Shown here piece by piece: positions 8,906 through 51,197 of a stretch of DNA of 51,197 nt (position 1 is its first letter; every line of letters starts with the position of its first letter). The notes below the pieces were generated by a model that saw only the letters and a list, made by a program, of their open reading frames with translations, ran no database searches and had not been told where the DNA came from. Both the position numbers and the translations under genes were made by a program. The DNA is from Macrostomum lignano (Eukaryota), in NCBI GenBank assembly GCA_002269645.1, contig NIVC01003572.1, positions 39,379 to 90,575 on the forward strand, read 5' to 3'.

Positions 8906-8939
8906 AAAAGTCATAACTTGTTCTCTATTGTTTAGACGT

Positions 8940-17960: not shown

Positions 17961-17993
17961 AAAGTCATAACATGTTCTCTATTGTTTAAACGT

Positions 17994-20120: not shown

Positions 20121-20189
20121 GACTCTCTATCAGGCCCTCGGGTCCTTCGAAACTTTACAATAGCAATCCGGCATGCTCATTGTTCGATA

Positions 20190-27902: not shown

Positions 27903-27932
27903 CCCTAACCCTAACCCTAACCCTAACCCTAA
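27903..27932 (-). repeat. Interstitial telomeric repeat (TTAGGG)5
   Basis: (CCCTAA)5 on plus. Confidence 0.9.
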
Positions 27933-28899
27933 AGCATTGAAATTTCAGTAATTCTCTCTAAGAGTCTATAGCACTACTACAGCATTATAGCGATTCCCTG
28001 CAAGCCTCGACATCGTAGGGATTCCCAAATGAATCTCTTAACTTTGACATGAAGCTTCTTTTTTTTTACATTACGCTTTTTCTATCAGCGATCCCTCCCG
28101 TGAGGAGCCAACAAATAATGTAATAACTTTTTTCCAATAAACTACATGTAGCTTCTGACATTAGCCTTGACATCTCATTTATTCCCCCGTGAGCCTTGAC
28201 ATCTCAGCTATAGATAGATAGATAGATTCCCCTCGTAAGCCTTGACATGTCAGCGATGCCCCCCATAAACCTTGAAATCTAAAAAATCCCCTGTTAACCT
28301 TGAAACGCGCTAAAATCTAACCCTCAACCCAAACCTGACGTAAACCTAACTTTCACCCAACCTAAAGCCTTGAAATCACAGCAATTCTTCTTCCCTAAGC
28401 CTTGGCATTTAAGTGATTCCTTCTTTAAGAATCACAGCACTATAACGATTCCCTCCAAGCTTTGACATCGTAGCAATTCCCAAATGAATCTTTTAACTTT
28501 GACATGACTTTTATTTTATGTATACATAGTGCTCCTTTTATTTTTACATGACTCTTCTTCTATCAGCGCCCCCCCCACCGTGGCAAGCCAACAAAGAATG
28601 CAATAAAAAACTTAAGTAAAGTACATGTACTTTGAAGTAGCTTCTGACTTTTGCTTTAACATCTCAGAAACCCCCCTGTAATCTCAGTTATTCTCTGTGA
28701 GCCTTGACGTCTCAGTAATTCTCCCCAGCACAGCACTGTACTATAGCTTCATTTAATTTTTATATGACATTTCTTTCATGTCTGACATGACGCTTCTTTT
28801 GATTTTTACGTTACGCTTCTTTTATTCTTCCATGATGCTTCTTAATTTTTTAAATGACACACTTTCATTAGTTTTTATATGAGGCTTCTATAATTTTTT

Positions 28900-29845
28900 C
28901 ATGACGCTTCTATGCTTGTTTACATGACGCTTGTATGATTTTTACATGACGCTTCTATGATTGTTTACATGACGCTTGTATGATTGTTTACATGACGCTT
29001 CTATGATTTTTACATGACGCTTCTATGATTTTTTTACATGACGCTTCTATGATTGTTTACATGACGCTTGTATGATTGTTTACATGACGCTTGTATGATT
29101 TTAACATGACGCTTCTATGATTTTTACATGACGCTTCTATGATTTTTACATGACGCTTCTATGATTTTTACATGACGCTTCTATGATTGTTTACATGACG
29201 CTTCTATGATTGTATACATGACGCTTCTATGATTGTTTACATGACGCTTCTATGATTGTATACATGACGCTTCTATGATTGTTTACATGACGCTTTTATG
29301 ATTGTTTACATGACGCTTCTATGATTTTTACATGACGCTTCTATGATTGTTTACATGACGCTTCTATGATTGTTTACATGACGCTTCTATGATTGTTTAC
29401 ATGACGCTTCTATGATTTTAACATGACGCTTCTATGATTTTTTTACATGACGCTTCTATGATTGTTTACATGACGCTTGTATGATTGTTTACATGACGCT
29501 TGTATGATTTTAACATGACGCTTCTATGATTGTTTACATTACGCTTCTATGATTGCTTGCATGACGCTTCTATGATTTTTTATGACGCTTTTATGATTTT
29601 AACATGACGCTTCTATGATTTTTTTACATGACGCTTCTATGATTGTTTACATGACGCTTGTATGATTGTTTACATGACGCTTTTATGATTTTAACATGAC
29701 GCTTCTATGATTGTTTACATTACGCTTCTATGATTTTTACATGACGCTTCTATGATTTTTACATGACGCTTCTATGATTGTTTACATGACGCTTCTATGA
29801 TTGTTTACATGACGCTTGTATGATTGTTTACATGACGCTTCCATA
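28900..29845. repeat. 22-23 bp satellite ACATGACGCTTCTATGATT(G)TTT, ~40 copies
   Basis: Direct reading. Confidence 0.95.
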
Positions 29846-29900
29846 ATTTTTTTTGTCTTGGCGTTAAAAGGCTTTAATTAAAAAAACTCTACTCTCTAAA

Positions 29901-30215: not shown

Positions 30216-30244
30216 TAATCCTATACATGTAGCCAAGCTTATCA

Positions 30245-33200
30245 AGCGCAGTAATCCTTGGCTATCGAGTGCAGTAATCCTTGGTTTATTAATAGCAATA
30301 ATCCATGGCTTATCGAGTGCAGTAATCCTTGGTTTATTAATAGCAATAATCCTTGGCTTATCGAGTGCAGTAATTCATGGTTTATTAATAGCAATAATCC
30401 TTGGCTTATCGAGTGCAGTAATCCTTGGTTTATTAATAGCAATAATCCATGCCTTATCGAGTGCAGTAATCCTTGGTTTATTAATAGCAATAATCCTTGG
30501 CTTATCGAGTGCAGTAATCCTTGGTTTGCCAAGTGCATAATCCTTGGTTTATTAATAGCAATAATCCTTGGTTTATCGAGTGCAGTAATCCTTGGTTTAT
30601 TAATAGCAATAATCCTTGGCTTATCGAGTGCAGTAATCCTTGGTTTATTAATAGCAATAATCCATGGCTTATCGAGTGCAGTAATCCTTGGTTTGCCAAG
30701 AGCAATAGTCCTTGGCTTATCGAGTGCAGTAATCCTTGGTTTGCCAAGAGCAATAGTCCTTGGTTTATTGAGTGCAGTAATCCTTGGTTTATTAATAGCA
30801 ATAGTCCTTGGTTTATTGAGTGCAGTAATCCTTGGTTTATTAATAGCAATAATCCTTGGCTTATCGAGTGCAGTAATCCTTGGTTTGCCAAGTGCATAAT
30901 CCTTGGTTTATCGAGTGCAGTAATCCTTGGTTTATTAATAGCAATAATCCTTGGCTTATCGAGTGCAGTAATCCTTGGTTTATTAATAGCAATAATCCAT
31001 GGCTTATCGAGTGCAGTAATCCTTGGTTTGCCAAGAGCAATAGTCCTTGGCTTATCGAGTGCAGTAATCCTTGGTTTGCCAAGAGCAATAGTCCTTGGTT
31101 TATTGAGTGCAGTAATCCTTGGTTTGCCAAGAGCAATAGTCCTTGGTTTATCGAGTGCAGTAATCCTTGGTTTATTAATAGCAATAATCCATGGCTTATC
31201 GAGTGCAGTAATCCTTGGTTTATTAATAGCAATAATCCATGGCTTATCGAGTGCAGTAATCCTTGGTTTGCCAAGAGCAATAGTCCTTGGCTTATCGAGT
31301 GCAGTAATCCTTGGTTTGCCAAGAGCAATAGTCCTTGGTTTATTGAGTGCAGTAATCCTTGGTTTGCCAAGAGCAATAGTCCTTGGTTTATTGAGTGCAG
31401 TAATCCTTGGTTTATTAATAGCAATAGTCCTTGGTTTATTGAGTGCAGTAATCCTTGGTTTATTAATAGCAATAATCCTTGGCTTATCGAGTGCAGTAAT
31501 CCTTGGTTTGCCAAGTGCATAATCCTTGATTTATCGAGTGCAGTAATCCTTGGTTTATTAATAGCAATAATCCTTGGCTTATCGAGTGCAGTAATCCTTG
31601 GTTTATTAATAGCAATAATCCTTGGCTTATCGAGTGCAGTAATCCTTGGTTTATTAATAGCAATAATCCATGGCTTATCGAGTGCAGTAATCCTTGGTTT
31701 GCCAAGAGCAATAGTCCTTGGCTTATCGAGTGCAGTAATCCTTGGTTTGCCAAGAGCAATAGTCCTTGGTTTATTGAGTGCAGTAATCCTTGGTTTATTA
31801 ATAGCAATAGTCCTTGGTTTATTGAGTGCAGTAATCCTTGGTTTATTAATAGCAATAATCCTTGGCTTATCGAGTGCAGTAATCCTTGGTTTGCCAAGTG
31901 CATAATCCTTGGTTTATCGAGTGCAGTAATCCTTGGTTTATTAATAGCAATAGTCCTTGGTTTATTGAGTGCAGTAATCCTTGGTTTATTAATAGCAATA
32001 ATCCATGGCTTATCGAGTGCAGTAATCCTTGGTTTGCCAAGAGCAATAGTCCTTGGCTTATCGAGTGCAGTAATCCTTGGTTTGCCAAGAGCAATAGTCC
32101 TTGGTTTATTGAGTGCAGTAATCCTTGGTTTATTAATAGCAATAATCCTTGGCTTATCGAGTGCAGTAATCCTTGGTTTATTAATAGCAATAATCCTTGG
32201 CTTATCGAGTGCAGTAATCCTTGGTTTATTAATAGCAATAATCCATGCCTTATCGAGTGCAGTAATCCTTGGTTTGCCAAGAGCAATAGTCCTTTGTTTA
32301 TTGAGTGCAGTAATCCTTGGTTTGCCAAGAGCAATAGTCCTTGGTTTATTGAGTGCAGTAATCCTTGGTTTATTAATAGCAATAGTCCTTGGTTTATTGA
32401 GTGCAGTAATCCTTGGTTTATTAATAGCAATAATCCTTGGCTTATCGAGTGCAGTAATCCTTGGTTTGCCAAGTGCATAATCCTTGGTTTATTAATAGCA
32501 ATAATCCTTGGTTTATCGAGTGCAGTAATCCTTGGTTTATTAATAGCAATAATCCTTGGCTTATCGAGTGCAGTAATCCTTGGTTTATTAATAGCAATAA
32601 TCCATGCCTTATCGAGTGCAGTAATCCTTGGTTTATTAATAGCAATAATCCTTGGCTTATCGAGTGCAGTAATCCTTGGTTTGCCAAGTGCATAATCCTT
32701 GGTTTATTAATAGCAATAATCCTTGGTTTATCGAGTGCAGTAATCCTTGGTTTATTAATAGCAATAATCCATGGCTTATCGAGTGCAGTAATCCTTGGTT
32801 TGCCAAGAGCAATAGTCCTTGGCTTATCGAGTGCAGTAATCCTTGGTTTGCCAAGAGCAATAGTCCTTGGTTTATTGAGTGCAGTAATCCTTGGTTTATT
32901 AATAGCAATAGTCCTTGGTTTATTGAGTGCAGTAATCCTTGGTTTATTAATAGCAATAATCCTTGGCTTATCGAGTGCAGTAATCCTTGGTTTGCCAAGT
33001 GCATAATCCTTGGTTTATCGAGTGCAGTAATCCTTGGTTTATTAATAGCAATAATCCTTGGCTTATCGAGTGCAGTAATCCTTGGTTTATTAATAGCAAT
33101 AATCCATGGCTTATCGAGTGCAGTAATCCTTGGTTTGCCAAGAGCAATAGTCCTTGGTTTATTGAGTGCAGTAATCCTTGGTTTATTAATAGCAATAATC

Positions 33201-34420
33201 CTTGGTTTATCGAGTGCAGTAATCCTTGGTTTATTAATAGCAATAATCCTTGGCTTATCGAGTGCAGTAATCCTTGGTTTGCCAAGTGCATAATCCTTGG
33301 TTTATTAATAGCAATAATCCTTGGCTTATCGAGTGCAGTAATCCTTGGTTTATTAATAGCAATAATCCTTGGTTTATCGAGTGCAGTAATCCTTGGTTTA
33401 TTAATAGCAATAATCCTTGCTTATCGAGTGCAGTAATCCTTGGTTTATTAATAGCAATAATCCATGCCTTATCGAGTGCAGTAATCCTTGGTTTATTAAT
33501 AGCAATAATCCTTGGCTTATCGAGTGCAGTAATCCTTGGTTTATTAATAGCAATAATCCATGGCTTATGAGTGCAGTAATCCTTGGTTTATTAATAGCAA
33601 TAATCCTTGGCTTATCGAGTGCAGTAATCCTTGGTTTATTAATAGCAATAATCCATGCCTTATCGAGTGCAGTAATCCTTGGTTTGCCAAGAGCAATAAT
33701 CCTTGGCTTATCGAGTGCAGTATTCCTTGGTTTGCCAAGTGCATAATCCTTGGTTTATTAATAGCAATAATCCTTGGTTTATCGAGTGCAGTAATCCTTA
33801 GTTTATTAATAGCAATAATCCTTGGCTTATCGAGTGCAGTAATCCTTGATTTATTAATAGCAATAATCCATGGCTTATCGAGTGCAGTAATCCTTGGTTT
33901 GCCAAGAGCAATAGTCCTTGGCTTATCGAGTGCAGTAATCCTTGGTTTGCCAAGAGCAATAGTCCTTGGTTTATTGAGTGCAGTAATCCTTGGTTTATTA
34001 ATAGCAATAATCCTTGGTTTATCGAGTGCAGTAATCCTTGGTTTATTAATAGCAATAATCCTTGGCTTATCGAGTGCAGTAATCCTTGGTTTATTAATAG
34101 CAATAATCCATGGCTTATGAGTGCAGTAATCCTTGGTTTATTAATAGCAATAATCCTTGGCTTATCGAGTGCAGTAATCCTTGGTTTATTAATAGCAATA
34201 ATCCATGGCTTATCGAGTGCAGTAATCCTTGGTTTGCCAAGAGCAATAATCCTTGGCTTATCGAGTGCAGTAATCCTTGGTTTGCCAAGAGCAATAATCC
34301 TTGGCTTATCGAGTGCAGTATTCCTTGGTTTGCCAAGAGCAATAATCCTTGGCTTATCGAGTGCAGTATTCCTTGGTTTGCCAAGAGCAATAATCCTTAG
34401 CTTATCGAGTGCAGTAATCT
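30245..34420. repeat. 24 bp monomer / 48 bp dimer satellite with higher-order blocks, ~174 monomers
   Basis: Alternating GAGTGCAGTAATCCTTGGTTT(ATT/GCC) and AA(T/G)AGCAATA(A/G)TCCTTGGCTTATC; punctuated by a 23 bp variant AAGTGCATAATCC. Confidence 0.97.
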
Positions 34421-34553: not shown

Positions 34554-35318
34554 ATCGAAGTTATCAGTGAATTTGTACCACTTATATAATTCAACACTCA
34601 CACCAAGTCAGGTAGAGTAAAAAGTCATAATCAAAGCAGTTATGACATAATCAATTTCTTAGGCAAGTCAGTACCAGTGTCTATGAAAGTTAACAATATG
34701 GTTACGTAATATAAATTCAGTACTGCACTATACTTTCACCCTCAAAGCTGTGACGCAATTCAATTGAGTGTCAAATTCAGCCAGTACACAGACGATAAAT
34801 AAAGTGTATTGTGATGCAATCTATTTCAGAATCAGAATTCAACCAGTCAGTTTTTCTGCTAGCATTCTTACAGTGCGTTTCAAGTCGAAATAGCTGCTTG
34901 ACCTTTGCAAAAAAACATGTTTTTCGAATATTTAATCCCTTTAACATTGAGCAATTTCTTAGCCAATATGCATGTACCGTCCCGGGAAAATTTCTGATCG
35001 AATGGTGCAAGTTTGAAGAAAATCGGTTGAGCCGTTCGGGAGAAAATCAATTACAAGCAAGCAACCAAGCATTTCATTTTTAGTATATTAGACTAGCAAT
35101 CTACGCCCCCCGTTGGGGAGCCAAAGAAATGCTATACACGTTTTTTTAATAAGCTACATGTATCCTTGAAATCTTAAAAAATCTCCTGTCAAACCTTGTA
35201 AGCCTTGACATGTCAGTAATTCCCCCCCCCCAGCTTTAACATATCAACTTCCCCCTTGACATCTCAGCAATGCCGCCAATAAGCCTTGGAAATCTAAAAA
35301 TATCTGTCAACCTTCCAA

Positions 35319-35359
35319 CCCTAACCCTAACCCTAACCCTAACCCTAACCTAACCCTAA
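35319..35359 (-). repeat. Interstitial telomeric repeat, ~7 TTAGGG units (one imperfect)
   Basis: (CCCTAA)5 CCTAA CCCTAA on plus; homologous position to 27903. Confidence 0.9.
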
Positions 35360-36254
35360 AGCATTGAAATTTCAGTAATTCTCTCTAAGAGTCATTATAG
35401 CACTACTACAGCATTATAGCGATAAGCTTCTTTTATTTTTTACATAACGCTTTTTTATCAGCGATCCCTCGCCTGAGGAGGCATCAAATAATGTAATAAA
35501 AAGTTTTCAATATACTACATGTAGCTTCTGACTTTAGCCTTGAAATCTCATTTATGCCCCCGTGAGCCTTGACATCTCAGCTATTCCCCCCCCGTAAGCC
35601 TTGACATGTCAGCGATGGCCCCCATAAACCTTGAAATCTAAAAAATCCACTGTTAACCTTGAAACCCGATAAAATATAACCCTCAACCCACACCTGACCT
35701 AAACCTAACTTTAACCCAACCTAAAGCCTTGAAATCTCAGCAATTCTTCTCCCCTAAGCCTTGACATTTTAGTGATTCCTTCTTTAAGAATCACAGCACT
35801 ATAACGATTTCCACCAAGCTTTGACATCGTAGCAATTCCCAAATGAATCTTTTAACTTCGACATGACTTTTCTTTTATGTATACATAGTGCTACTTTTAT
35901 TTTTTACATGTCTCTTCTTTTATCAGCACCCCCCCCCATGGCGAGCCAACAAAGAATGCAATAAAAAATTGAGTAAATTACATGAACTTTGAAGTAGCTT
36001 TTGACTTTTGCTTTGAGATCCCAGAAACAACCCCCCCCCCCTCGTAATCTCAGTTATTCTCTCAGAGCCTTTACTTCTCAGTTTCTCTTCCCAGCACAGC
36101 ATTATAGCTGCATTTCATTTTTACATGACACCCTTCATGTCTGACATGACGCTTCTTTTGATTTTTACATTACACTTCTTTTATTCTTCCATGATGCTTC
36201 TTAATTTTTTAAATGACGCTTTCATTAGTTTTTAAATGAGGCTTCTTTGAATTT

Positions 36255-37170
36255 TTCATGACGCTTCTATGATTGTTTACATGACGCTTCTATGCTTTTT
36301 ACATGACACTTCTATGCTTTTTACATGACGCTTCTATGATTATTTCATGACGCTTCTATGATTGTTTACATGACGCTTCTATGATTGTTTACATGATGCT
36401 TCTACGATTTCTGCAGGACGCTTCTATGATTTTTACATGATGCTTCTATGATTTTTTCATGACGCTCCTATGATTTTTTCATGACGCTTCTATGATTGTT
36501 TCATGACGCTTCCATGATTTTTTACATGACACTTCTATGATTTATACATGACGCTTCCATGATTTTTTCATGACGCTTCTGTGATTGTTTATATGACGCT
36601 TCTATGCTTTTTATATGACGCTTCTATGATTTTTTACATGACGCTTCTATGCTTTTTACATGACGCTTCCATGATTTTTTCATGACGCTTCTGTGATTGT
36701 TTATATGACGCTTCTATGCTTTTTATATGACGCTTCTATGATTTTTTAATGACGATTCTATGATTTTTACATGACGCTTCTATGCTTTTTACATGACGCT
36801 TCTATGATTATTTCATGACGCTTCTACGATATCTGCAGGACGCTTCTATGATTGTTTACATGACGCTTCTATGAATTTTACATGACGCTTCTATGATTTT
36901 TTCATGACGCTTCTATGATTTTTTACATGACGCTTCTATGATTTTTTCATGACGCTTCTATGATTTTTTCATGACGCTTCTATGATTTTTTACATGACGC
37001 TTCTATGATTTTTTCATGACGCTTCTATGATTTTTTACATGACGCTTCTATGATTGTTTACATGACGCTTCTATGATTTTTACATGACGCTTCTATGATT
37101 TTTTACATGACGCTTCCATGATTTTTTCATGACGCTTCTATGATTTTTTACATGACGCTTCTATGATTTT
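36255..37170. repeat. 22-23 bp CATGACGCTTCTATGATT satellite, ~40 copies
   Basis: Same family as 28900-29845. Confidence 0.95.
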
Positions 37171-37222
37171 TTAGTTTTCTTGGTGTTAAAAAGCTTTAAT
37201 TAAAAAAATTCCACTCTCTAAA

Positions 37223-37281: not shown

Positions 37282-37768
37282 ATCGTTTTGATAATATGAA
37301 TTTTAGCACTTATAATTATAAGTTTCAAAACTCTAAGCATAGAGTAAATCACACGAGGCAGTTATGACATAATCAATTTCTCAGTCAGTCAGTATCAGTT
37401 AACAATATGGTTACGCAATTTAAATCAAGTCTGGTGCTACGCTTCCACACTGCATTTTCAATTCAAGTCAGAGTTACAATTCAGTTATGATGCAATCTAT
37501 TTCAGAATCAGAATTCAACCAGTCAGTTTTTTCTCTAGCATTCTTACAATGCATTTCAAGTCGAAAAGTTTGCTTGACCTTTGCAAAAAAACATGTTTTT
37601 CGAATATTTAATCCTTTTAACATGGAGCAATTTCTTAGCCAAGATGCATGTACCGTCACGGGAAAATTTCTGATCAAACAGTGCAAGTCTCATGAAAATC
37701 GGTTAAGCCATTTTTTCTCTAATCGATTACAAGCAAGCAACCAAGCATTTCATTTTTAGTATATAGGA

Positions 37769-38215
37769 AATTATGGAAATTCACAATTCAAAGTTTTCCC
37801 AATGCCAAACAGTTCAATTTCTTTTCTGAATGCAATTTTAACGACTCTGGGTTGGTTATTAAGTGGTCGCAGCTGCGATCGCAGCGGTCAGGGTTTTCAA
37901 TAGTTTTAAAATGTAGCAGTCAGTGTTTAAGGTCTGACTCGATCTGAATATGGCAGAACTATAGCCATAAAAAAGCTAGCCGTTTAACCACTCCTAATCT
38001 GTGAGCTGAAGTTAGCTAACACTTGGCAATAGTTTGAATAACCCATATATAATAACCCATATATATGGCTAAAACAAATTTTGACCCACCAATATCGCAA
38101 CTCTACAAGGGGTATGAACAGAATTTTTCAATGCTTTTTTTCGTTGGGTCCTTGCATAATTAATTGCAGTACGACAGATCGCCCTGTATCACACACACAC
38201 ACACACACACAAACG
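37769..38215 (+). repeat. Segmental duplication, copy 2, right part
   Basis: aattatggaaattcacaattcaaagttttcccaatgcc matches 14451 onward, to about 14895. Confidence 0.92.
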
Positions 38216-38832
38216 TGCACGAGGCACTTATTGGCCAAGTGTGCAAAAGCTTGCACATATTGGGACTGCTCCGACACACGAAAAATCACACACACACACG
38301 TCCCCACACAGGCAATTTTCAACCCACCAAATCGATTTTTATTGACAACATGCTTTTGGCTTACTGAAAACAGTTGGAAAGCATTTTTCGAGGTGCATTG
38401 AACTCACAACAGATTGTACATGTATACTTGTCTAAAACAGAATTAAAAAACCCTGGTGTCTTGCTGAATTCCACTTAAGGCAATAATATCAGCGCGTCAA
38501 ATTTCACTAGATAATTTCAGCGATCATAGATTATAGAAGACAGGATGGTAAATGGCAAGGGACTTTAAGGTTATCGAAAACAAACGACATTGACACATAT
38601 CAAAAAAATTTTACGATCTGAATAAACAAAATTTGCTACATTTAGTGCCACTGGGAAAAAACAATTCTGTAGCGAAACTCCACTGTTCATAAAAATGTAC
38701 TTTATTGATTATGACACAATCACTAGAATTACTCAAAAGGTACATGTCAGCTATTCGGACCCACAGAATGCTACGTAAAAGGATGCGGAAATGAACCACA
38801 CTATAGCAGAAGCCAGCACACACTATAGTATG

Positions 38833-39011
38833 GGGCTGTCCCAACAATTCCAGCATAGCCAGTGTGGATAGGGCTGTCCCAACAATTCCACCATAGCCAG
38901 TGTGGATAGGGCTGTCCCAACAATTCCACCATAGCCAGTGTGGATAGGGCTGTCCCAACAATTCCACCATAGCCAGTGTGGATGGGGCTGTCCCAACAAT
39001 TCCAGCATAGC
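38833..39011. repeat. 38 bp minisatellite, ~4.7 copies
   Basis: GGGCTGTCCCAACAATTCCA(G/C)CATAGCCAGTGTGGATA at 38833, 38871, 38909, 38947, 38985. Confidence 0.95.
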
Positions 39012-39165
39012 TTGAAAAAGAATATATACAAATACTATAAAAAGCAAATGCTAGAGCTCTACCGCGGTCATTGCACCGGATTTTATTAGAAAAAGACTGC
39101 AAAAAAAAATGCGTCCTCTGAATAATATTCCAGTGAAGCGCACAACATTTGATCGGCTTCTCGAT

Positions 39166-39383
39166 TCAGAAACTTAAAAAATAACCAGCTCTGCCAGAAA
39201 ACTCATCAATTAACTGACTGCCGGCACGGATAGCGGCTGCTGCTGCTGCTGCTGCTGCTGAGGCTTGTGAGCAGCAAGTGAACCAAATGACGGATGCAGC
39301 GGCGAGATCAGAATGCTCGCTGCTGATCGTTAAAGCGCATTCTTGTCTCTTAGGCATGTCGCTGGCGTTGCTGACTTCAGAAG
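39166..39383 (-). CDS. Candidate terminal coding exon (diverged last module of the 635 bp array)
   Basis: Same acceptor (39386-39384) and first ~55 codons as the array exon, then diverges to LIDEFSGRAGYFLSF* (TGA 39168-39166); AATAAA at 39087-39082 on minus. Confidence 0.45.
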
Positions 39384-42300
39384 CTGCGAGGAAAAGAAAT
39401 CAATTAAGATAGGCTTGCTTTAGTAATCATTAATACGCTATAAAGGAACCCTTTAATAGAACGTGTTCAACTAATGCTGGGTCTGTTTTGAAAAGTCAGA
39501 ACTCAGAAGTAGTCGCGATTAGAATCAGTATTGTCCCAGTAAGTGCGACCCAACAAATGCTGTTCAAAAATAGGCCTGGCTGCAATGTCCCAATAAATGC
39601 CCAACAAATTACTAGCCTTGAGCTAGGCTGGGCTGTGTTTACTATTCATTGCGTTTGTAGCTTGTGTCCCAACAATGCCACTGAGATTGTTGCATTGCTT
39701 TTGAATTGTGCTCTACCAGGTAACACAAGTACTCTGGTGTACAATACTTCTACAGCAGATAATACTCACCCAAAACAGATCGTCTCTTTCTCTTTAATCC
39801 TGTGCCAGACGGGTTTTCTTCAGATCCACCAGAAAATTCACAAATAGACTGACTGCCTGCACGGATAGCGGCTGCTGCTGCTGCTGCTGCTGCTGCGGCT
39901 TGTGAGCAGCAAGTGAACCAAATGACGGATGCAGCGGCGAGATCAGAATGCTCGCTGCTGATCGTTAAAGCGCATTCTTGTCTCTTAGGCATGTCGCTGG
40001 CGTTGCTGACTTCAGAAGCTGCGAGGAAAAGAAATCAATTAAGATAGGCTTGCTTTAGTAATCATTAATACGCTATAAAGGAACCCTTTAATAGAACGTG
40101 TTCAACTAATGCTGGGTCTGTTTTGAAAAGTCAGAACTCAGAAGTAGTCGCGATTAGAATCAGTATTGTCCCAATAAGTGCGACCCAACAAATGCTGTTC
40201 AAAAAATAGGCCTGGCTGCAATGTCCCAATAAATGCCCAACAAATTACTAGCCTTGAGCTAGGCTGGGCTGTGTTTACTATTCATTGCGTTTGTAGCTTG
40301 TGTCCCAACAATGCCACTGAGATTGTTGCATTGCTTTTGAATTGTGCTCTACCAGGTAACACAAGTACTCTGGTGTACAATACTTCTACAGCAGATAATA
40401 CTCACCCAAAACAGATCGTCTCTTTCTCTTTAATCCTGTGCCAGACGGGTTTTCTTCAGATCCACCAGAAAATTCACAAATAGACTGACTGCCTGCACGG
40501 ATAGCGGCTGCTGCTGCTGCTGCTGCTGCTGCGGCTTGTGAGCAGCAAGTGAACCAAATGACGGATGCAGCGGCGAGATCAGAATGCTCGCTGCTGATCG
40601 TTAAAGCGCATTCTTGTCTCTTAGGCATGTCGCTGGCGTTGCTGACTTCAGAAGCTGCGAGGAAAAGAAATCAATTAAGATAGGCTTGCTTTAGTAATCA
40701 TTAATAGGCTATAAAGGAACCCTTTAATAGAACGTGTTCAACTAATGCTGGGTCTGTTTTGAAAAGTCAGAACTCAGAAGTAGTCGCGATTAGAATCAGT
40801 ATTGTCCCAATAAGTGCGACCCAACAAATGCTGTTCAAAAATAGGCCTGGCTGCAATGTCCCAATAAATGCCCAACAAATTACTAGCCTTGAGCTAGGCT
40901 GGGCTGTGTTTACTATTCATTGCGTTTGTAGCTTGTGTCCCAACAATGCCACTGAGATTGTTGCATTGCTTTTGAATTGTGCTCTACCAGGTAACACAAG
41001 TACTCTGGTGTACAATACTTCTACAGCAGATAATACTCACCCAAAACAGATCGTCTCTTTCTCTTTAATCCTGTGCCAGACGGGTTTTCTTCAGATCCAC
41101 CAGAAAATTCACAATAGACTGACTGCCTGCACGGATAGCGGCTGCTGCTGCTGCTGCTGCTGCTGCGGCTTGTGAGCAGCAAGTGAACCAAATGACGGAT
41201 GCAGCGGCGAGATCAGAATGCTCGCTGCTGATCGTTAAAGCGCATTCTTGTCTCTTAGGCATGTCGCTGGCGTTGCTGACTTCAGAAGCTGCGAGGAAAA
41301 GAAATCAATTAAGATAGGCTTGCTTTAGTAATCATTAATAGGCTATAAAGGAACCCTTTAATAGAACGTGTTCAACTAATGCTGGGTCTGTTTTGAAAAG
41401 TCAGAACTCAGAAGTAGTCGCGATTAGAATCAGTATTGTCCCAATAAGTGCGACCCAACAAATGCTGTTCAAAAATAGGCCTGGCTGCAATGTCCCAATA
41501 AATGCCCAACAAATTACTAGCCTTGAGCTAGGCTGGGCTGTGTTTACTATTCATTGCGTTTGTAGCTTGTGTCCCAACAATGCCACTGAGATTGTTGCAT
41601 TGCTTTTGAATTGTGCTCTACCAGGTAACACAAGTACTCTGGTGTACAATACTTCTACAGCAGATAATACTCACCCAAAACAGATCGTCTCTTTCTCTTT
41701 AATCCTGTGCCAGACGGGTTTTCTTCAGATCCACCAGAAAATTCACAAATAGACTGACTGCCTGCACGGATAGCGGCTGCTGCTGCTGCTGCTGCTGCTG
41801 CGGCTTGTGAGCAGCAAGTGAACCAAATGACGGATGCAGCGGCGAGATCAGAATGCTCGCTGCTGATCGTTAAAGCGCATTCTTGTCTCTTAGGCATGTC
41901 GCTGGCGTTGCTGACTTCAGAAGCTGCGAGGAAAAGAAATCAATTAAGATAGGCTTGCTTTAGTAATCATTAATAGGCTATAAAGGAACCCTTTAATAGA
42001 ACGTGTTCAACTAATGCTGGGTCTGTTTTGAAAAGTCAGAACTCAGAAGTAGTCGCGATTAGAATCAGTATTGTCCCAATAAGTGCGACCCAACAAATGC
42101 TGTTCAAAAAATAGGCCTGGCTGCAATGTCCCAATAAATGCCCAACAAATTACTAGCCTTGAGCTAGGCTGGGCTGTGTTTACTATTCATTGCGTTTGTA
42201 GCTTGTGTCCCAACAATGCCACTGAGATTGTTGCATTGCTTTTGAATTGTGCTCTACCAGGTAACACAAGTACTCTGGTGTACAATACTTCTACAGCAGA

Positions 42301-45300
42301 TAATACTCACCCAAAACAGATCGTCTCTTTCTCTTTAATCCTGTGCCAGACGGGTTTTCTTCAGATCCACCAGAAAATTCACAAATAGACTGACTGCCTG
42401 CACGGATAGCGGCTGCTGCTGCTGCTGCTGCTGCTGCGGCTTGTGAGCAGCAAGTGAACCAAATGACGGATGCAGCGGCGAGATCAGAATGCTCGCTGCT
42501 GATCGTTAAAGCGCATTCTTGTCTCTTAGGCATGTCGCTGGCGTTGCTGACTTCAGAAGCTGCGAGGAAAAGAAATCAATTAAGATAGGCTTGCTTTAGT
42601 AATCATTAATAGGCTATAAAGGAACCCTTTAATAGAACGTGTTCAACTAATGCTGGGTCTGTTTTGAAAAGTCAGAACTCAGAAGTAGTCGCGATTAGAA
42701 TCAGTATTGTCCCAATAAGTGCGACCCAACAAATGCTGTTCAAAAATAGGCCTGGCTGCAATGTCCCAATAAATGCCCAACAAATTACTAGCCTTGAGCT
42801 AGGCTGGGCTGTGTTTACTATTCATTGCGTTTGTAGCTTGTGTCCCAACAATGCCACTGAGATTGTTGCATTGCTTTTGAATTGTGCTCTACCAGGTAAC
42901 ACAAGTACTCTGGTGTACAATACTTCTACAGCAGATAATACTCACCCAAAACAGATCGTCTCTTTCTCTTTAATCCTGTGCCAGACGGGTTTTCTTCAGA
43001 TCCACCAGAAAATTCACAAATAGACTGACTGCCTGCACGGATAGCGGCTGCTGCTGCTGCTGCTGCTGCTGCGGCTTGTGAGCAGCAAGTGAACCAAATG
43101 ACGGATGCAGCGGCGAGATCAGAATGCTCGCTGCTGATCGTTAAAGCGCATTCTTGTCTCTTAGGCATGTCGCTGGCGTTGCTGACTTCAGAAGCTGCGA
43201 GGAAAAGAAATCAATTAAGATAGGCTTGCTTTAGTAATCATTAATAGGCTATAAAGGAACCCTTTAATAGAACGTGTTCAACTAATGCTGGGTCTGTTTT
43301 GAAAAGTCAGAACTCAGAAGTAGTCGCGATTAGAATCAGTATTGTCCCAATAAGTGCGACCCAACAAATGCTGTTCAAAAATAGGCCTGGCTGCAATGTC
43401 CCAATAAATGCCCAACAAATTACTAGCCTTGAGCTAGGCTGGGCTGTGTTTACTATTCATTGCGTTTGTAGCTTGTGTCCCAACAATGCCACTGAGATTG
43501 TTGCATTGCTTTTGAATTGTGCTCTACCAGTAACACAAGTACTCTGGTGTACAATACTTCTACAGCAGATAATACTCACCCAAAACAGATCGTCTCTTTC
43601 TCTTTAATCCTGTGCCAGACGGGTTTTCTTCAGATCCACCAGAAAATTCACAAATAGACTGACTGCCTGCACGGATAGCGGCTGCTGCTGCTGCTGCTGC
43701 TGCTGCGGCTTGTGAGCAGCAAGTGAACCAAATGACGGATGCAGCGGCGAGATCAGAATGCTCGCTGCTGATCGTTAAAGCGCATTCTTGTCTCTTAGGC
43801 ATGTCGCTGGCGTTGCTGACTTCAGAAGCTGCGAGGAAAAGAAATCAATTAAGATAGGCTTGCTTTAGTAATCATTAATAGGCTATAAAGGAACCCTTTA
43901 ATAGAACGTGTTCAACTAATGCTGGGTCTGTTTTGAAAAGTCAGAACTCAGAAGTAGTCGCGATTAGAATCAGTATTGTCCCAATAAGTGCGACCCAACA
44001 AATGCTGTTCAAAAAATAGGCCTGGCTGCAATGTCCCAATAAATGCCCAACAAATTACTAGCCTTGAGCTAGGCTGGGCTGTGTTTACTATTCATTGCGT
44101 TTGTAGCTTGTGTCCCAACAATGCCACTGAGATTGTTGCATTGCTTTTGAATTGTGCTCTACCAGGTAACACAAGTACTCTGGTGTACAATACTTCTACA
44201 GCAGATAATACTCACCCAAAACAGATCGTCTCTTTCTCTTTAATCCTGTGCCGACGGGTTTTCTTCAGATCCACCAGAAAATTCACAAATAGACTGACTG
44301 CCTGCACGGATAGCGGCTGCTGCTGCTGCTGCTGCTGCTGCGGCTTGTGAGCAGCAAGTGAACCAAATGACGGATGCAGCGGCGAGATCAGAATGCTCGC
44401 TGCTGATCGTTAAAGCGCATTCTTGTCTCTTAGGCATGTCGCTGGCGTTGCTGACTTCAGAAGCTGCGAGGAAAAGAAATCAATTAAGATAGGCTTGCTT
44501 TAGTAATCATTAATAGGCTATAAAGGAACCCTTTAATAGAACGTGTTCAACTAATGCTGGGTCTGTTTTGAAAAGTCAGAACTCAGAAGTAGTCGCGATT
44601 AGAATCAGTATTGTCCCAATAAGTGCGACCCAACAAATGCTGTTCAAAAAATAGGCCTGGCTGCAATGTCCCAATAAATGCCCAACAAATTACTAGCCTT
44701 GAGCTAGGCTGGGCTGTGTTTACTATTCATTGCGTTTGTAGCTTGTGTCCCAACAATGCCACTGAGATTGTTGCATTGCTTTTGAATTGTGCTCTACCAG
44801 GTAACACAAGTACTCTGGTGTACAATACTTCTACAGCAGATAATACTCACCCAAAACAGATCGTCTCTTTCTCTTTAATCCTGTGCCAGACGGGTTTTCT
44901 TCAGATCCACCAGAAAATTCACAAATAGACTGACTGCCTGCACGGATAGCGGCTGCTGCTGCTGCTGCTGCTGCTGCGGCTTGTGAGCAGCAAGTGAACC
45001 AAATGACGGATGCAGCGGCGAGATCAGAATGCTCGCTGCTGATCGTTAAAGCGCATTCTTGTCTCTTAGGCATGTCGCTGGCGTTGCTGACTTCAGAAGC
45101 TGCGAGGAAAAGAAATCAATTAAGATAGGCTTGCTTTAGTAATCATTAATAGGCTATAAAGGAACCCTTTAATAGAACGTGTTCAACTAATGCTGGGTCT
45201 GTTTTGAAAAGTCAGAACTCAGAAGTAGTCGCGATTAGAATCAGTATTGTCCCAATAAGTGCGACCCAACAAATGCTGTTCAAAAAATAGGCCTGGCTGC

Positions 45301-48300
45301 AATGTCCCAATAAATGCCCAACAAATTACTAGCCTTGAGCTAGGCTGGGCTGTGTTTACTATTCATTGCGTTTGTAGCTTGTGTCCCAACAATGCCACTG
45401 AGATTGTTGCATTGCTTTTGAATTGTGCTCTACCAGGTAACACAAGTACTCTGGTGTACAATACTTCTACAGCAGATAATACTCACCCAAAACAGATCGT
45501 CTCTTTCTCTTTAATCCTGTGCCGACGGGTTTTCTTCAGATCCACCAGAAAATTCACAAATAGACTGACTGCCTGCACGGATAGCGGCTGCTGCTGCTGC
45601 TGCTGCTGCTGCGGCTTGTGAGCAGCAAGTGAACCAAATGACGGATGCAGCGGCGAGATCAGAATGCTCGCTGCTGATCGTTAAAGCGCATTCTTGTCTC
45701 TTAGGCATGTCGCTGGCGTTGCTGACTTCAGAAGCTGCGAGGAAAAGAAATCAATTAAGATAGGCTTGCTTTAGTAATCATTAATAGGCTATAAAGGAAC
45801 CCTTTAATAGAACGTGTTCAACTAATGCTGGGTCTGTTTTGAAAAGTCAGAACTCAGAAGTAGTCGCGATTAGAATCAGTATTGTCCCAATAAGTGCGAC
45901 CCAACAAATGCTGTTCAAAAATAGGCCTGGCTGCAATGTCCCAATAAATGCCCAACAAATTACTAGCCTTGAGCTAGGCTGGGCTGTGTTTACTATTCAT
46001 TGCGTTTGTAGCTTGTGTCCCAACAATGCCACTGAGATTGTTGCATTGCTTTTGAATTGTGCTCTACCAGGTAACACAAGTACTCTGGTGTACAATACTT
46101 CTACAGCAGATAATACTCACCCAAAACAGATCGTCTCTTTCTCTTTAATCCTGTGCCGACGGGTTTTCTTCAGATCCACCAGAAAATTCACAAATAGACT
46201 GACTGCCTGCACGGATAGCGGCTGCTGCTGCTGCTGCTGCTGCTGCGGCTTGTGAGCAGCAAGTGAACCAAATGACGGATGCAGCGGCGAGATCAGAATG
46301 CTCGCTGCTGATCGTTAAAGCGCATTCTTGTCTCTTAGGCATGTCGCTGGCGTTGCTGACTTCAGAAGCTGCGAGGAAAAGAAATCAATTAAGATAGGCT
46401 TGCTTTAGTAATCATTAATAGGCTATAAAGGAACCCTTTAATAGAACGTGTTCAACTAATGCTGGGTCTGTTTTGAAAAGTCAGAACTCAGAAGTAGTCG
46501 CGATTAGAATCAGTATTGTCCCAATAAGTGCGACCCAACAAATGCTGTTCAAAAAATAGGCCTGGCTGCAATGTCCCAATAAATGCCCAACAAATTACTA
46601 GCCTTGAGCTAGGCTGGGCTGTGTTTACTATTCATTGCGTTTGTAGCTTGTGTCCCAACAATGCCACTGAGATTGTTGCATTGCTTTTGAATTGTGCTCT
46701 ACCAGGTAACACAAGTACTCTGGTGTACAATACTTCTACAGCAGATAATACTCACCCAAAACAGATCGTCTCTTTCTCTTTAATCCTGTGCCGACGGGTT
46801 TTCTTCAGATCCACCAGAAAATTCACAAATAGACTGACTGCCTGCACGGATAGCGGCTGCTGCTGCTGCTGCTGCTGCTGCGGCTTGTGAGCAGCAAGTG
46901 AACCAAATGACGGATGCAGCGGCGAGATCAGAATGCTCGCTGCTGATCGTTAAAGCGCATTCTTGTCTCTTAGGCATGTCGCTGGCGTTGCTGACTTCAG
47001 AAGCTGCGAGGAAAAGAAATCAATTAAGATAGGCTTGCTTTAGTAATCATTAATAGCTATAAAGGAACCCTTTAATAGAACGTGTTCAACTAATGCTGGG
47101 TCTGTTTTGAAAAGTCAGAACTCAGAAGTAGTCGCGATTAGAATCAGTATTGTCCCAATAAGTGCGACCCAACAAATGCTGTTCAAAAAATAGGCCTGGC
47201 TGCAATGTCCCAATAAATGCCCAACAAATTACTAGCCTTGAGCTAGGCTGGGCTGTGTTTACTATTCATTGCGTTTGTAGCTTGTGTCCCAACAATGCCA
47301 CTGAGATTGTTGCATTGCTTTTGAATTGTGCTCTACCAGGTAACACAAGTACTCTGGTGTACAATACTTCTACAGCAGATAATACTCACCCAAAACAGAT
47401 CGTCTCTTTCTCTTTAATCCTGTGCCAGACGGGTTTTCTTCAGATCCACCAGAAAATTCACAAATAGACTGACTGCCTGCACGGATAGCGGCTGCTGCTG
47501 CTGCTGCTGCTGCTGCGGCTTGTGAGCAGCAAGTGAACCAAATGACGGATGCAGCGGCGAGATCAGAATGCTCGCTGCTGATCGTTAAAGCGCATTCTTG
47601 TCTCTTAGGCATGTCGCTGGCGTTGCTGACTTCAGAAGCTGCGAGGAAAAGAAATCAATTAAGATAGGCTTGCTTTAGTAATCATTAATAGGCTATAAAG
47701 GAACCCTTTAATAGAACGTGTTCAACTAATGCTGGGTCTGTTTTGAAAAGTCAGAACTCAGAAGTAGTCGCGATTAGAATCAGTATTGTCCCAATAAGTG
47801 CGACCCAACAAATGCTGTTCAAAAATAGGCCTGGCTGCAATGTCCCAATAAATGCCCAACAAATTACTAGCCTTGAGCTAGGCTGGGCTGTGTTTACTAT
47901 TCATTGCGTTTGTAGCTTGTGTCCCAACAATGCCACTGAGATTGTTGCATTGCTTTTGAATTGTGCTCTACCAGGTAACACAAGTACTCTGGTGTACAAT
48001 ACTTCTACAGCAGATAATACTCACCCAAAACAGATCGTCTCTTTCTCTTTAATCCTGTGCCAGACGGGTTTTCTTCAGATCCACCAGAAAATTCACAAAT
48101 AGACTGACTGCCTGCACGGATAGCGGCTGCTGCTGCTGCTGCTGCTGCTGCGGCTTGTGAGCAGCAAGTGAACCAAATGACGGATGCAGCGGCGAGATCA
48201 GAATGCTCGCTGCTGATCGTTAAAGCGCATTCTTGTCTCTTAGGCATGTCGCTGGCGTTGCTGACTTCAGAAGCTGCGAGGAAAAGAAATCAATTAAGAT

Positions 48301-51197
48301 AGGCTTGCTTTAGTAATCATTAATAGGCTATAAAGGAACCCTTTAATAGAACGTGTTCAACTAATGCTGGGTCTGTTTTGAAAAGTCAGAACTCAGAAGT
48401 AGTCGCGATTAGAATCAGTATTGTCCCAATAAGTGCGACCCAACAAATGCTGTTCAAAAATAGGCCTGGCTGCAATGTCCCAATAAATGCCCAACAAATT
48501 ACTAGCCTTGAGCTAGGCTGGGCTGTGTTTACTATTCATTGCGTTTGTAGCTTGTGTCCCAACAATGCCACTGAGATTGTTGCATTGCTTTTGAATTGTG
48601 CTCTACCAGGTAACACAAGTACTCTGGTGTACAATACTTCTACAGCAGATAATACTCACCCAAAACAGATCGTCTCTTTCTCTTTAATCCTGTGCCAGAC
48701 GGGTTTTCTTCAGATCCACCAGAAAATTCACAAATAGACTGACTGCCTGCACGGATAGCGGCTGCTGCTGCTGCTGCTGCTGCTGCGGCTTGTGAGCAGC
48801 AAGTGAACCAAATGACGGATGCAGCGGCGAGATCAGAATGCTCGCTGCTGATCGTTAAAGCGCATTCTTGTCTCTTAGGCATGTCGCTGGCGTTGCTGAC
48901 TTCAGAAGCTGCGAGGAAAAGAAATCAATTAAGATAGGCTTGCTTTAGTAATCATTAATAGGCTATAAAGGAACCCTTTAATAGAACGTGTTCAACTAAT
49001 GCTGGGTCTGTTTTGAAAAGTCAGAACTCAGAAGTAGTCGCGATTAGAATCAGTATTGTCCCAATAAGTGCGACCCAACAAATGCTGTTCAAAAATAGGC
49101 CTGGCTGCAATGTCCCAATAAATGCCCAACAAATTACTAGCCTTGAGCTAGGCTGGGCTGTGTTTACTATTCATTGCGTTTGTAGCTTGTGTCCCAACAA
49201 TGCCACTGAGATTGTTGCATTGCTTTTGAATTGTGCTCTACCAGGTAACACAAGTACTCTGGTGTACAATACTTCTACAGCAGATAATACTCACCCAAAA
49301 CAGATCGTCTCTTTCTCTTTAATCCTGTGCCGACGGGTTTTCTTCAGATCCACCAGAAAATTCACAAATAGACTGACTGCCTGCACGGATAGCGGCTGCT
49401 GCTGCTGCTGCTGCTGCTGCGGCTTGTGAGCAGCAAGTGAACCAAATGACGGATGCAGCGGCGAGATCAGAATGCTCGCTGCTGATCGTTAAAGCGCATT
49501 CTTGTCTCTTAGGCATGTCGCTGGCGTTGCTGACTTCAGAAGCTGCGAGGAAAAGAAATCAATTAAGATAGGCTTGCTTTAGTAATCATTAATAGGCTAT
49601 AAAGGAACCCTTTAATAGAACGTGTTCAACTAATGCTGGGTCTGTTTTGAAAAGTCAGAACTCAGAAGTAGTCGCGATTAGAATCAGTATTGTCCCAATA
49701 AGTGCGACCCAACAAATGCTGTTCAAAAATAGGCCTGGCTGCAATGTCCCAATAAATGCCCAACAAATTACTAGCCTTGAGCTAGGCTGGGCTGTGTTTA
49801 CTATTCATTGCGTTTGTAGCTTGTGTCCCAACAATGCCACTGAGATTGTTGCATTGCTTTTGAATTGTGCTCTACCAGTAACACAAGTACTCTGGTGTAC
49901 AATACTTCTACAGCAGATAATACTCACCCAAAACAGATCGTCTCTTTCTCTTTAATCCTGTGCCGACGGGTTTTCTTCAGATCCACCAGAAAATTCACAA
50001 ATAGACTGACTGCCTGCACGGATAGCGGCTGCTGCTGCTGCTGCTGCTGCGGCTTGTGAGCAGCAAGTGAACCAAATGACGGATGCAGCGGCGAGATCAG
50101 AATGCTCGCTGCTGATCGTTAAAGCGCATTCTTGTCTCTTAGGCATGTCGCTGGCGTTGCTGACTTCAGAATCTGCGAGGAAAAGAAATCAATTAAGATA
50201 GGCTTGCTTTAGTAATCATTAATAGCTATAAAGGAACCCTTTAATAGAACGTGTTCAACTAATGCTGGGTCTGTTTTGAAAAGTCAGAACTCAGAAGTAG
50301 TCGCGATTAGAATCAGTATTGTCCCAATAAGTGCGACCCAACAAATGCTGTTCAAAAAAGGCCTGGCTGCAATGTCCCAATAAATGCCCAACAAATTACT
50401 AGCCTTGAGCTAGGCTGGGCTGTGTTTACTATTCATTGCGTTTGTAGCTTGTGTCCCAACAATGCCACTGAGATTGTTGCATTGCTTTTGAATTGTGCTC
50501 TACCAGGTAACACAAGTACTCTGGTGTACAATACTTCTACAGCAGATAATACTCACCCAAAACAGATCGTCTCTTTCTCTTTAATCCTGTGCCGACGGGT
50601 TTTCTTCAGATCCACCAGAAAATTCACAAATAGACTGACTGCCTGCACGGATAGCGGCTGCTGCTGCTGCTGCTGCTGCGCGGCTTGTGAGCAGCAAGTG
50701 AACCAAATGACGGATGCAGCGGCGAGATCAGAATGCTCGCTGCTGATCGTTAAAGCGCATTCTTGTCTCTTAGGCATGTCGCTGGCGTGCTGACTTCAGA
50801 AGCTGCGAGGAAAAGAAATCAAAATAATTAAGATAGCTTGCTTTAGTAATCATTAATACGCTATAAACCCTTTAATAGAACGTGTTCAACTAATGCTGGG
50901 TCTGTTTTGAAAAGTCAGAACTCAGAAGTAGTCGCGATTAGAATCAGTATTGTCCCAATAAGTGCGACCCAACAAATGCTGTTCAAAAATAGGCCTGGCT
51001 GCAATGTCCCAATAAATGCCCAACAAATTACTAGCCTTGAGCTAGGCTGGGCTGTGTTTACTATTCATTGCGTTTGTAGCTTGTGTCCCAAACAATGCCA
51101 CTGAGATTGTTGCATTGCTTTTGAATTGTGCTCTACCAGTAAACACAAGTACTCTGGTGTACAATACTTCTACAGCAGATAATACTCACCCAAAAAG
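39196..51197. repeat. 635 bp tandem array, ~19 near-identical units, running off the window end
   Basis: ORF-track period 634-636 bp (e.g. 39992, 40628, 41262, 41897); each unit has a (GCT)8 tract. Confidence 0.98.
39770..40018 (-). CDS. Representative 249 nt phase 1-1 exon candidate of the array (18 internal copies, 10 frame-intact)
   Basis: Acceptor ttgatttcttttcctcgCAG (40021-40019); donor TTGG|GTGAGT (39769); 83 codons; only the phase-1 frame is open: (A)SEVSNASDMPKRQECAL...AAAA...SGTGLKRKRRSVL. Confidence 0.5.

Follow-up and report, generated by a model that had tools for sequence, protein, structure and literature searches.

The stretch of DNA analysed here, hereafter the window, comprises 51,197 nucleotides of Macrostomum lignano (assembly GCA_002269645.1, Mlig_3_7; contig NIVC01003572.1, positions 39,379-90,575), and its reverse complement is our locus L007. 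One end of the window is occupied by a tandem array of a 635-bp repeat, each unit of which, read on the minus strand, begins with an intron of 386 nt and ends with a phase 1-1 exon of 249 nt, and the array is carried, here and at other loci, by a conserved module that resembles a transposon. Eighteen near-identical full units, with 0-17 differences each from their consensus, are followed by a diverged nineteenth, terminal unit, in which the match to the consensus extends to unit position 584 and divergence begins at about 547-584. On this side window and source contig end together, and the array runs up to that point; its 5' part is thus unassembled and not merely beyond view. A preliminary description of this DNA, which saw in the array a gene with its 5' end outside the window, was right that this end is absent from the window, although the contig itself stops there. 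The array and its 3' end comprise the following features.

39186..51197, minus strand: 635-bp tandem array, 18 full units and a terminal unit matching the consensus to position 584
50802-50557, 50172-49928, 49542-49295, 48908-48660, 48273-48025, 47638-47390, minus strand: internal exons, first six
47003-46756, 46368-46121, 45734-45487, 45099-44851, 44463-44216, 43828-43580, minus strand: internal exons, middle six
43194-42946, 42559-42311, 41923-41675, 41288-41041, 40654-40406, 40018-39770, minus strand: internal exons, last six
39770..50802, minus strand: all 18 internal exons, 10 of them intact 249-nt phase 1-1 exons and 8 frame-disrupted
39166..39383, minus strand: terminal exon, ending ...AAAIRAGSQLIDEFSGRAGYFLSF / ...IRAGSQLIDEFSGRAGYFLSF with the TGA at 39168-39166; a like end is found in the protein model P0004
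39082..39087, minus strand: AATAAA poly(A) signal, 78 nt past the stop, kept in loci L001 and L003

The minus strand bears 19 donors of the form GG|GTGAGTATTATC at a spacing of 629-636 nt and 19 acceptors TTCTTTTCCTCRCAG|, the 3' end of the unit intron being TTCTTTTCCTCGCAG. Read in phase 1-1, the consensus exon translates as ASEVSNASDMPKRQECALTISSEHSDLAAASVIWFTCCSQ(A)11IRAGSQSICEFSGGSEENPSGTGLKRKRRSVL, identical to the translation in the preliminary description. The tandem exon array postulated there was borne out in its donors, its acceptors and its 249-nt phase 1-1 exon; the terminal copy does stop at 39166, with AATAAA 78 nt on where about 80 nt had been estimated, and the count of 8 disrupted copies among 18 was reproduced (units u1, u2, u3, u7, u8, u9, u11 and u16). 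The combined exon signature of the unit is not a product of chance. A pyrimidine-tract-CAG acceptor and a GTRAGT donor enclosing an open exon of 3n length arose at a length of at least 150 nt in 4 of 2000 dinucleotide shuffles of the unit and at a length of at least 240 nt in none (0/2000). By itself the open frame is unremarkable, being found in 16% of shuffled exons, and the plus strand of the unit holds longer open reading frames (ORFs) of 119-138 amino acids (aa). Tandem Repeats Finder (TRF), run with a maximum period of 500, missed the array and listed only internal (GCT)n runs about 635 bp apart.

Transcription and splicing of the array are supported by the public gene models. A protein search with two concatenated units gave 29 matches, all of them (29/29) from M. 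lignano. The Mlig_3_7 annotation was derived from RNA-seq data by means of StringTie, TACO, a de novo transcriptome, TBONE for transcript boundaries and TransDecoder for ORFs (PMC5730564), so the appearance of the predicted junction in these models points to an array that is both transcribed and spliced. The predicted nucleotide junction is TTTTGG|CTTCTGAAG, and its support comes from gene models, not from individual reads. Its translated form, ...GLKRKRRSVL|ASEVSNASDMPKR... (KRKRRSVL|ASEVS), occurs in the GenBank models P0001, P0004 and P0030, with one or two SVL|ASEV junctions in each. The partial model P0030 (130 aa) reads GTGLKRKRRSVL|ASEVS...KRKRRSVL|ASEVS..., and the predicted junction between units, already put forward in the preliminary description, is represented on the window array by four copies of this model.

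48158-49331, 43079-44252, 40539-42982 and 39268-40442, minus strand: four P0030 model copies, BOX15_Mlig029855g39, with coordinates converted from L007

When rebuilt from the genomic exons of L001, P0004 matched except in the length of its poly-Ala tract. The model P0046 is a read-through of the donor (...SVLGEY), which indicates that unspliced RNA is also present. The donor and acceptor motifs (GTGAGT, YCAG) were kept in all 106 units of nine arrays and agree with the M. lignano splice motifs GT[G/A]AG and CAG (PMC8629364), and the exon has a length of 3n with the same phase at both ends (consensus 249 nt, phase 1-1). A spliced tandem exon array with a terminal stop and poly(A) signal is already implicit in public gene models, in which the GenBank family name Mlig029855 spans at least g10 to g39. 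Our literature search found no published description of the 635-bp repeat, the Mlig gene identifiers were absent from the full-text literature and paper supplements searched for expression data, and the M. lignano subgenome paper does not mention satellites.

The array always lies within one module, composed of a 5' arm, n x 635 bp and a 3' arm. The 5' arm of 2,463 bp is full length in L001, L003, L004, L008 and L011, and the 3' arm of 981 bp in L001, L003, L004, L006, L010 and the window (6 loci with 5 distinct flanks); the identity of the arms to those of L001 is 91%-99%. The arrays, 5-12 kb or longer and located in gene introns, range from 7.5 units (L001) to at least 19 (window). The ends of the module are sharp, and the flanks outside (TG)n are unrelated between loci, so that at least five unrelated sites are occupied. 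The element starts as ...(TG)nTTT|GTGCATTAGG... and finishes as ...CCTCGTGCAC|GTTTG(TG)n, and its ends form imperfect terminal inverted repeats of 38 nt with 28/38 positions matching, which score 29 against a shuffle maximum of 22 (0/2000). The array is thus carried by a dispersed element that has terminal inverted repeats, and is not one gene locus, as the single gene of the preliminary description would have been. The window contains the 3' side of this element.

38215..39185, minus strand: element 3' arm, about 0.98 kb, holding the 3' untranslated region and a 38-bp x4.7 repeat at 38833-39011
about 38251-38215, minus strand: 3' terminal inverted repeat ...AGCTTTTGCACACTTGGCCAATAAGTGCCTCGTGCAC, the end of the 3' arm
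38190..38214, minus strand: GTTTG(TG)n microsatellite, the 3' bound of the element; sequence further out is unrelated between loci

The arms have no conserved ORF (the 143-aa ORF of L001 is one of 68 aa in L004), give no Pfam or Rfam match and encode no transposase. Rfam scans, with the gathering threshold on the window and in E-value mode on the whole L001 element, and tRNA scans were without matches, thus the unit is not derived from a known RNA gene or a short interspersed element (SINE). A long terminal repeat structure was rejected, the arms having no similarity to each other, and so was the possibility that the arrays are homeologues from whole-genome duplication, given the unrelated flanks outside (TG)n and the arm identities of 91%-99%. 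The intron was also considered as a diverged copy of the 3' flank and rejected, since the two have only a 17-nt GTTGGGAC-type motif in common. On the plus strand, the motif GTCCCAAYAA(R) occurs twice per monomer, with 37 matches, all in the array, where 0.1 would be expected. A close variant, GTCCCAACAAT, is borne by the 38-bp repeat of the 3' arm, and a related 21-nt motif is situated in inverse orientation near the 5' end of the element (L001 4519-4539). This motif could be a protein-binding site or the remnant of a sub-repeat.

The sites of insertion were characterised in three further loci. In L004, the element lies in sense orientation in an intron of a myosin heavy-chain gene, between the exons encoding ...GANIET and YLLEKARV (...GKFIRINFDTTGFIAGANIET and (Y)LLEKARVIQQAKDERCFHIFYQ). 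The host intron, bounded at about 5035 and 20460, is of phase 1 (...GAG ACT T|gtatcc ... acgtag|AC CTG CTA GAA) and has the orientation of the array exons, thus intact array exons would preserve the myosin frame if they were included; this match of phase and orientation is a single case and may be a coincidence. The L003 element, antisense to its host, occupies the first intron (at least 20 kb) of a TIR-domain gene and splits a sequence that is uninterrupted at 35075|35055 of the window; that of L008 lies downstream of a cathepsin-L-like gene. The window segment 14450-14893 is 94% identical to 37768-38208, just beyond the 3' end of the element, and ends in a degenerate CA-rich tract to which no element is joined. 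As a possible paralogous empty site, it suggests that (TG)n/(CA)n tracts were already present where the element now sits. With an identity of 85-94%, these empty-site-like paralogues (35075|35055 compared with L003, and 14450-14893 with 37768-38208) are not true alleles.

The evidence on balance favours the view that the array is an expandable internal repeat of a non-autonomous, transposon-like element of M. lignano whose ORF drifts near-neutrally. Strong canonical splice sites in each monomer have the effect that RNA transcribed through the array (window minus strand) is spliced monomer to monomer, and a stop codon and poly(A) signal are present just past the last, diverged monomer. Unequal exchange would grow, shrink and homogenise the array, so that disabling mutations would spread as readily as any other change. 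The 83-codon frame would be a relic, most likely of a captured or amplified gene fragment, giving rise to RNA fragments with ORFs, which annotation pipelines enter under 'hypothetical protein', and it would encode no maintained multi-copy peptide precursor.

The maintenance of the frame was assessed in a census of nine distinct arrays with 106 full units. Whereas the splice-site pair was kept in 106/106 units, the frame was intact in 72/106 exons, distributed as 7/7 in L011, 8/9 in L003, 7/8 in L004, 5/6 in L001, 11/14 in L006, 10/13 in L008, 11/15 in L010, 10/18 in the window and 3/16 in L002. The longest run of intact exons in the window is 4. A TGG>TAG substitution (W34*) is found in 11 of the 16 units of L002 and 2 further units have this base deleted, so that reading stops in 13/16 units. 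One 1-bp deletion in the window, GTC[T/C]GG>GTCGG at unit position 598, is common to 7/18 units and yields ...ENPSAQD*; the terminal exon of L003 is frameshifted, and in L006/L010 a 383-bp insertion interrupts one exon. Loss of frame and splice sites in units elsewhere, which the preliminary description would have counted against its proposal, was seen for the frame and never for the splice sites. Outside the poly-Ala tract, the exon carries 15 substitution variants over 221 nt and the intron 22 over 386 nt (Fisher p = 0.60), with 14 and 28 indel types, respectively (p = 0.74). The exon variants comprised 4 synonymous, 10 non-synonymous and 1 stop at 50.3 synonymous and 171.7 non-synonymous sites, corresponding to an omega (dN/dS) of about 0.8, and omega <=0.2 was rejected (p = 0.011). 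The product length predicted per copy extends from 24 aa to >500 aa. All in all, the 83-codon frame probably drifts like non-coding DNA, nearly neutrally.

The 5' boundary of the array, wherever visible, lies at position 454 of the unit and follows an acceptor of its own, CACGCACAG|GTTCATCC (longer form TTTTTCTTTTGTGCGCCCACGCACAG|GTTCATCC), and the 3' boundary is at unit position 584 in the loci where it can be seen. The first array exon is open in the same frame and phase and has a length of 3n in 6/7 loci, and it contains no ATG in this frame (frame A) in 7/7 loci. The conserved 2.46-kb 5' arm has no ATG-started segment that reaches a phase-1 GTRAG donor and no signal-peptide exon. All gene models examined are either 5'-partial or begin at an internal Met10 (MPKRQECALT...). 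The spliced leader of M. lignano ends in ATG (PMC8629364); on the first exon it would open a different frame, MVHPHSNSPLHPSF...RPAQD*, with an ORF of 55-56 aa, and on the other array acceptors it would give a 17-aa ORF in another frame. The UniProt models P0025 and P0028 begin exactly at the first-exon acceptor, in the spliced-leader frame.

Homologues were sought in an exhaustive HMMER search of 1.84 billion representative proteins, which returned only M. lignano repeat models and the low-complexity match P0053, with no parental gene and no homologue from another species. Pfam searches with the unit peptide, the alternative frame, the plus-strand ORF and the arm ORFs gave no real match; PF14442 on P0002 was considered and rejected because no individual stretch was significant. 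AlphaFold2 modelling of P0004 from the single sequence produced no confident fold (mean predicted local distance difference test score, pLDDT, 38.6) and was uninformative. Every unit has a 25-residue hydrophobic stretch that includes the poly-Ala tract, with a Kyte-Doolittle mean of up to 1.4. The UniRef entries A0A1I8HX90 and A0A1I8FV09 constitute a divergent subfamily B, as opposed to the subfamily A described so far, with the unit ASKVSNASDMPKREDSTSTINSEHSDIADALATSCLLAAQEQQQTLLMQTGCSQSIDDLSCGAKDNSSGKGLKRKRRSVL, which in A0A1I8HX90 is repeated three or more times and followed by an analogous diverged terminal exon. The two subfamilies are 53% identical overall, with one 3-aa gap, and the positions of their Cys residues differ. 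In the model P0052 a B-type exon is spliced to an A-type exon, thus both types can share one locus. Subfamily B had no tblastn match in the fetched loci and no GenBank member in a second protein search.

Several observations weigh against a near-neutrally drifting frame on a transposon-like element. The arrays of L011, L003 and L004 are fully or nearly intact (7/7, 8/9 and 7/8 exons), and with only 15 variants, and hence low power, an omega of 0.5 is still compatible with the data. Of the exon indel types, 13/14 are 1-bp deletions, chiefly in short homopolymers, and since the assembly is PacBio-based (PMC5730564), errors in its consensus may explain some of the broken frames; this explanation is less easily applied to W34*, a substitution, or to the deletion shared by blocks of units. 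The exon has a higher G+C content than the intron (0.51 vs 0.40). The exon of subfamily B, with 80 codons, is likewise 3n in length and retains the frame, uninterrupted for at least three units, and its ends are near-identical to those of subfamily A over the first 13 and the last ~13 residues (ASKVSNASDMPKR and GLKRKRRSVL). This pattern would fit a coding frame under constraint, with conserved processing sites around a fast-evolving peptide, and the same frame and KRKRR of subfamily B keep some coding role alive. It would also fit conservation of the splicing signals or a gene conversion that affects the exon ends only, and the evidence from subfamily B is ascertainment-biased because protein databases list open frames only. 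As to mobility, all copies are bordered 5' by (TG)n-TTT and 3' by GTTTG(TG)n, and no copy-specific target-site duplication is readable; with GTTT and (TG)n identical in all copies, such a duplication is in fact undefinable. Dispersal by (TG)n recombination or microsatellite-mediated duplication is an alternative to transposition.

The preliminary description had favoured a functional, copy-number-variable gene, the polyprotein of which would be cut by furin-type convertases at KRKRR (and PKR), freeing four-Cys peptides. Much of what such a gene would need is present, from the exon array with its symmetric phase and junction-spanning transcripts to the terminal stop and AATAAA; several models are auto-named 'Secreted protein' in UniProt, and KRKRR and PKR, which bound each repeat as had been noted and can be traced as a motif match in the consensus exon and in subfamily B, are conserved between A and B while the intervening sequence has diverged. 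We nevertheless regard this precursor as very improbable. The copy number does vary, from 7.5 to at least 19 units, but the precursor itself is unsupported: there is no upstream signal-peptide or ATG exon, the first exon is without an in-frame ATG, the frame is kept in 72/106 exons with runs of at most 4 in the window and stops in 13/16 units of L002, and omega is about 0.8. The Cys positions, which are not conserved in subfamily B, speak against the proposed release of four-Cys peptides, and the hydrophobic poly-Ala stretch is atypical of a released peptide; no relatives were found outside M. lignano among the 1.84 billion proteins, and the AlphaFold2 pLDDT was 38.6. Second in likelihood to the drifting satellite, though still rather unlikely, is a young lineage-specific protein family that resides on the element or was duplicated with it, under weak constraint and with many pseudogenes, whose members would start at the internal Met (MPKRQECALT...) and contain one to about seven repeats and possibly a signal-like hydrophobic segment. 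It would account for the retention in subfamily B of frame, 3n length and exon ends, for the several intact arrays and for the many gene models beginning at MPKRQ, and an omega of 0.5 is not rejected; against it, exon and intron vary equally, disabling mutations are homogenised within arrays, product length ranges from 24 to >500 aa without any Pfam domain, and subfamily B is known through the biased sample of protein databases.

The phase 1-1, 3n exons with strong splice sites in 106/106 units could also act as an exon cassette, so that a sense insertion in a phase-1 intron would add in-frame 83-aa modules to the host mRNA. The sense insertion in the phase-1 myosin heavy-chain intron of L004 is in line with this idea, as are repeat-only UniProt models named after host genes (Rho-GAP, UCH, Dymeclin, BAF250_C, DRIM). 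However, L004 is the one host intron examined, a match of phase and orientation is expected by chance in about 1 in 6 cases, no model joins a host exon with an array exon, the element of L003 is antisense to its host gene, and an insertion in the myosin motor domain would probably destroy its function, all of which makes such a cassette quite improbable. More generally, we consider it unlikely that the mobile exon array is biologically used, be it as a KRKRR/PKR-bounded peptide precursor or as an in-frame exon cassette for host genes with a phase-1 insertion such as that in L004; if the frame were translated, the element would be a rare mobile array-encoded peptide gene or an exon-shuffling vehicle. 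An assembly artefact or a chance resemblance to exons might be suspected from the PacBio assembly, the position of the array at a contig end and the open frame that alone appears in 16% of shuffles, but it is already refuted by the recurrence of the same array and arms on at least eight contigs, by an exon signature of at least 240 nt in 0/2000 shuffles and by the junctions in RNA-based models.

An internal repeat of a non-autonomous, transposon-like element, which remains our preferred explanation, has counterparts in several known systems. Satellites seeded by transposons with internal repeats have been described for the Tetris foldback element of Drosophila virilis (PMC4079207) and for satellites associated with transposable elements in oysters (PMC8268682), and the rise of satellites within transposons has been reviewed (PMC12628747, PMC9659126). 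Like these, the M. lignano element is non-autonomous, has terminal inverted repeats and a central tandem array with a copy number that varies per insertion, and forms short arrays scattered through introns and probably through euchromatin. In contrast to them, its monomer is long (635 bp) and comprises a full spliced, phase-symmetric exon together with an intron, and its terminal inverted repeats are short and imperfect (38 nt, ~75% identity) and bounded by (TG)n. In transduplication of the Pack-MULE/Helitron type, non-autonomous elements contain transcribed, spliced gene fragments that are mostly unconstrained and annotated as coding. The M. lignano element likewise carries transcribed, spliced exon-intron sequence annotated as genes, but no parental gene was found for it and the module is amplified in tandem inside the element.

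Coding macrosatellites and exon-per-unit variable number tandem repeats, such as human LPA kringle IV-2, NBPF Olduvai and D4Z4/DUX4, are fixed single loci with a frame under selection. The M. lignano array resembles them in the exon of constant phase provided by each unit and in its variable copy number, and it resembles D4Z4 in particular in that the poly(A) signal is supplied only past the last unit; it is unlike them in its dispersal on a mobile module and in a frame that is broken in one third of the units. Multi-copy precursors cut at dibasic or furin sites include the FMRFamide-type neuropeptides, apidaecin and Drosophila Baramicin. The R/K-rich motifs that separate the M. lignano repeats, fitting R-X-K/R-R, are a likeness to this group, whereas the array differs from it in having no signal peptide, continuous ORF or conserved would-be mature peptide and in possessing one intron and a hydrophobic poly-Ala core per repeat.

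Our results have direct consequences for annotation, since fragments of a single repeat family make up at least 39 GenBank 'genes' and dozens of UniProt entries. The GenBank genes belong to Mlig029855 g10-g39, Mlig003618, Mlig026960, Mlig020682 and Mlig033615, and some of the UniProt entries were automatically named 'Secreted protein' or after host genes. As the 635-bp period exceeds the usual 500-bp limit of TRF, the models probably passed the repeat filter of the Mlig_3_7 GenBank submission (PMC5730564). The repeat is a clean example of a satellite monomer that is a full exon-intron module riding a transposon-like element, and it links three topics usually kept apart, i.e., the birth of satellites in transposable elements, exonisation, and spurious or de novo ORFs. 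The models P0002, P0008, P0010, P0014, P0023, P0055 and P0056 hop between frame A and the alternative frame (SILISPLHPSFGSLAAHKPQQQ...LVDLKKTRPAQD) via invented junctions. Several such frame-hopping models in UniProt and WormBase ParaSite bear host-gene names, yet the sequences shown for them are repeat units only, and they are probably annotation artefacts of elements located in the introns of host genes.

The 383-bp insertion that splits one exon in L006 (8374-8756) and L010 (11220-11603) is GC-rich and lies inside the (GCA)n tract of the array exon. A (GAAA)n tail and flanking copies of GCAGCAGC make it look like a retroposon or SINE. Its first ~105 nt give a weak full-length match to RF00094, the hepatitis delta virus (HDV) ribozyme (26.8 bits compared with a gathering threshold of 50, E 0.02-0.065), and this match begins at the first base of the insertion. 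Some non-LTR retrotransposons are known to carry HDV-like ribozymes at their 5' ends.

The rest of the window is mostly a patchwork of minisatellites (1872-6050, 24133-26709, 28785-29852, 30239-34419 and 36144-37173), among them a 13-bp repeat x336, a 23-bp repeat x112, a 22/23-bp repeat x47 (twice) and a 24/48-bp repeat x175. In the non-array part, Rfam and tRNA scans were negative and none of the ORFs outside the repeats was conspicuous, these ORFs not having been scanned against protein families. A segmental duplication relates positions 6000-14500 to 14700-23300 at an offset of about 8.65 kb, with the same series of minisatellites in both halves (6924-7148 = 15579-15803; 8753-8903 / 17412-17958) and identical 107-aa ORFs at 7243-7566 and 15898-16221. 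Around the L003 element, the minisatellite blocks of the patchwork recur in another order. Interstitial repeats of the telomere type, (CTAACC)5.7 at 27899-27932 and (AACCCT)7.3 at 35317-35359, correspond to TTAGGG on the opposite strand. Another dispersed repeat is present in three copies with 75-82% identity (26953-27261, 34811-35083 and 37487-37759), which have in common an ORF ...FAKKHVFRIFNPFNIEQFLSQ..., and the element copy of L003 is inserted at the edge of one such repeat.

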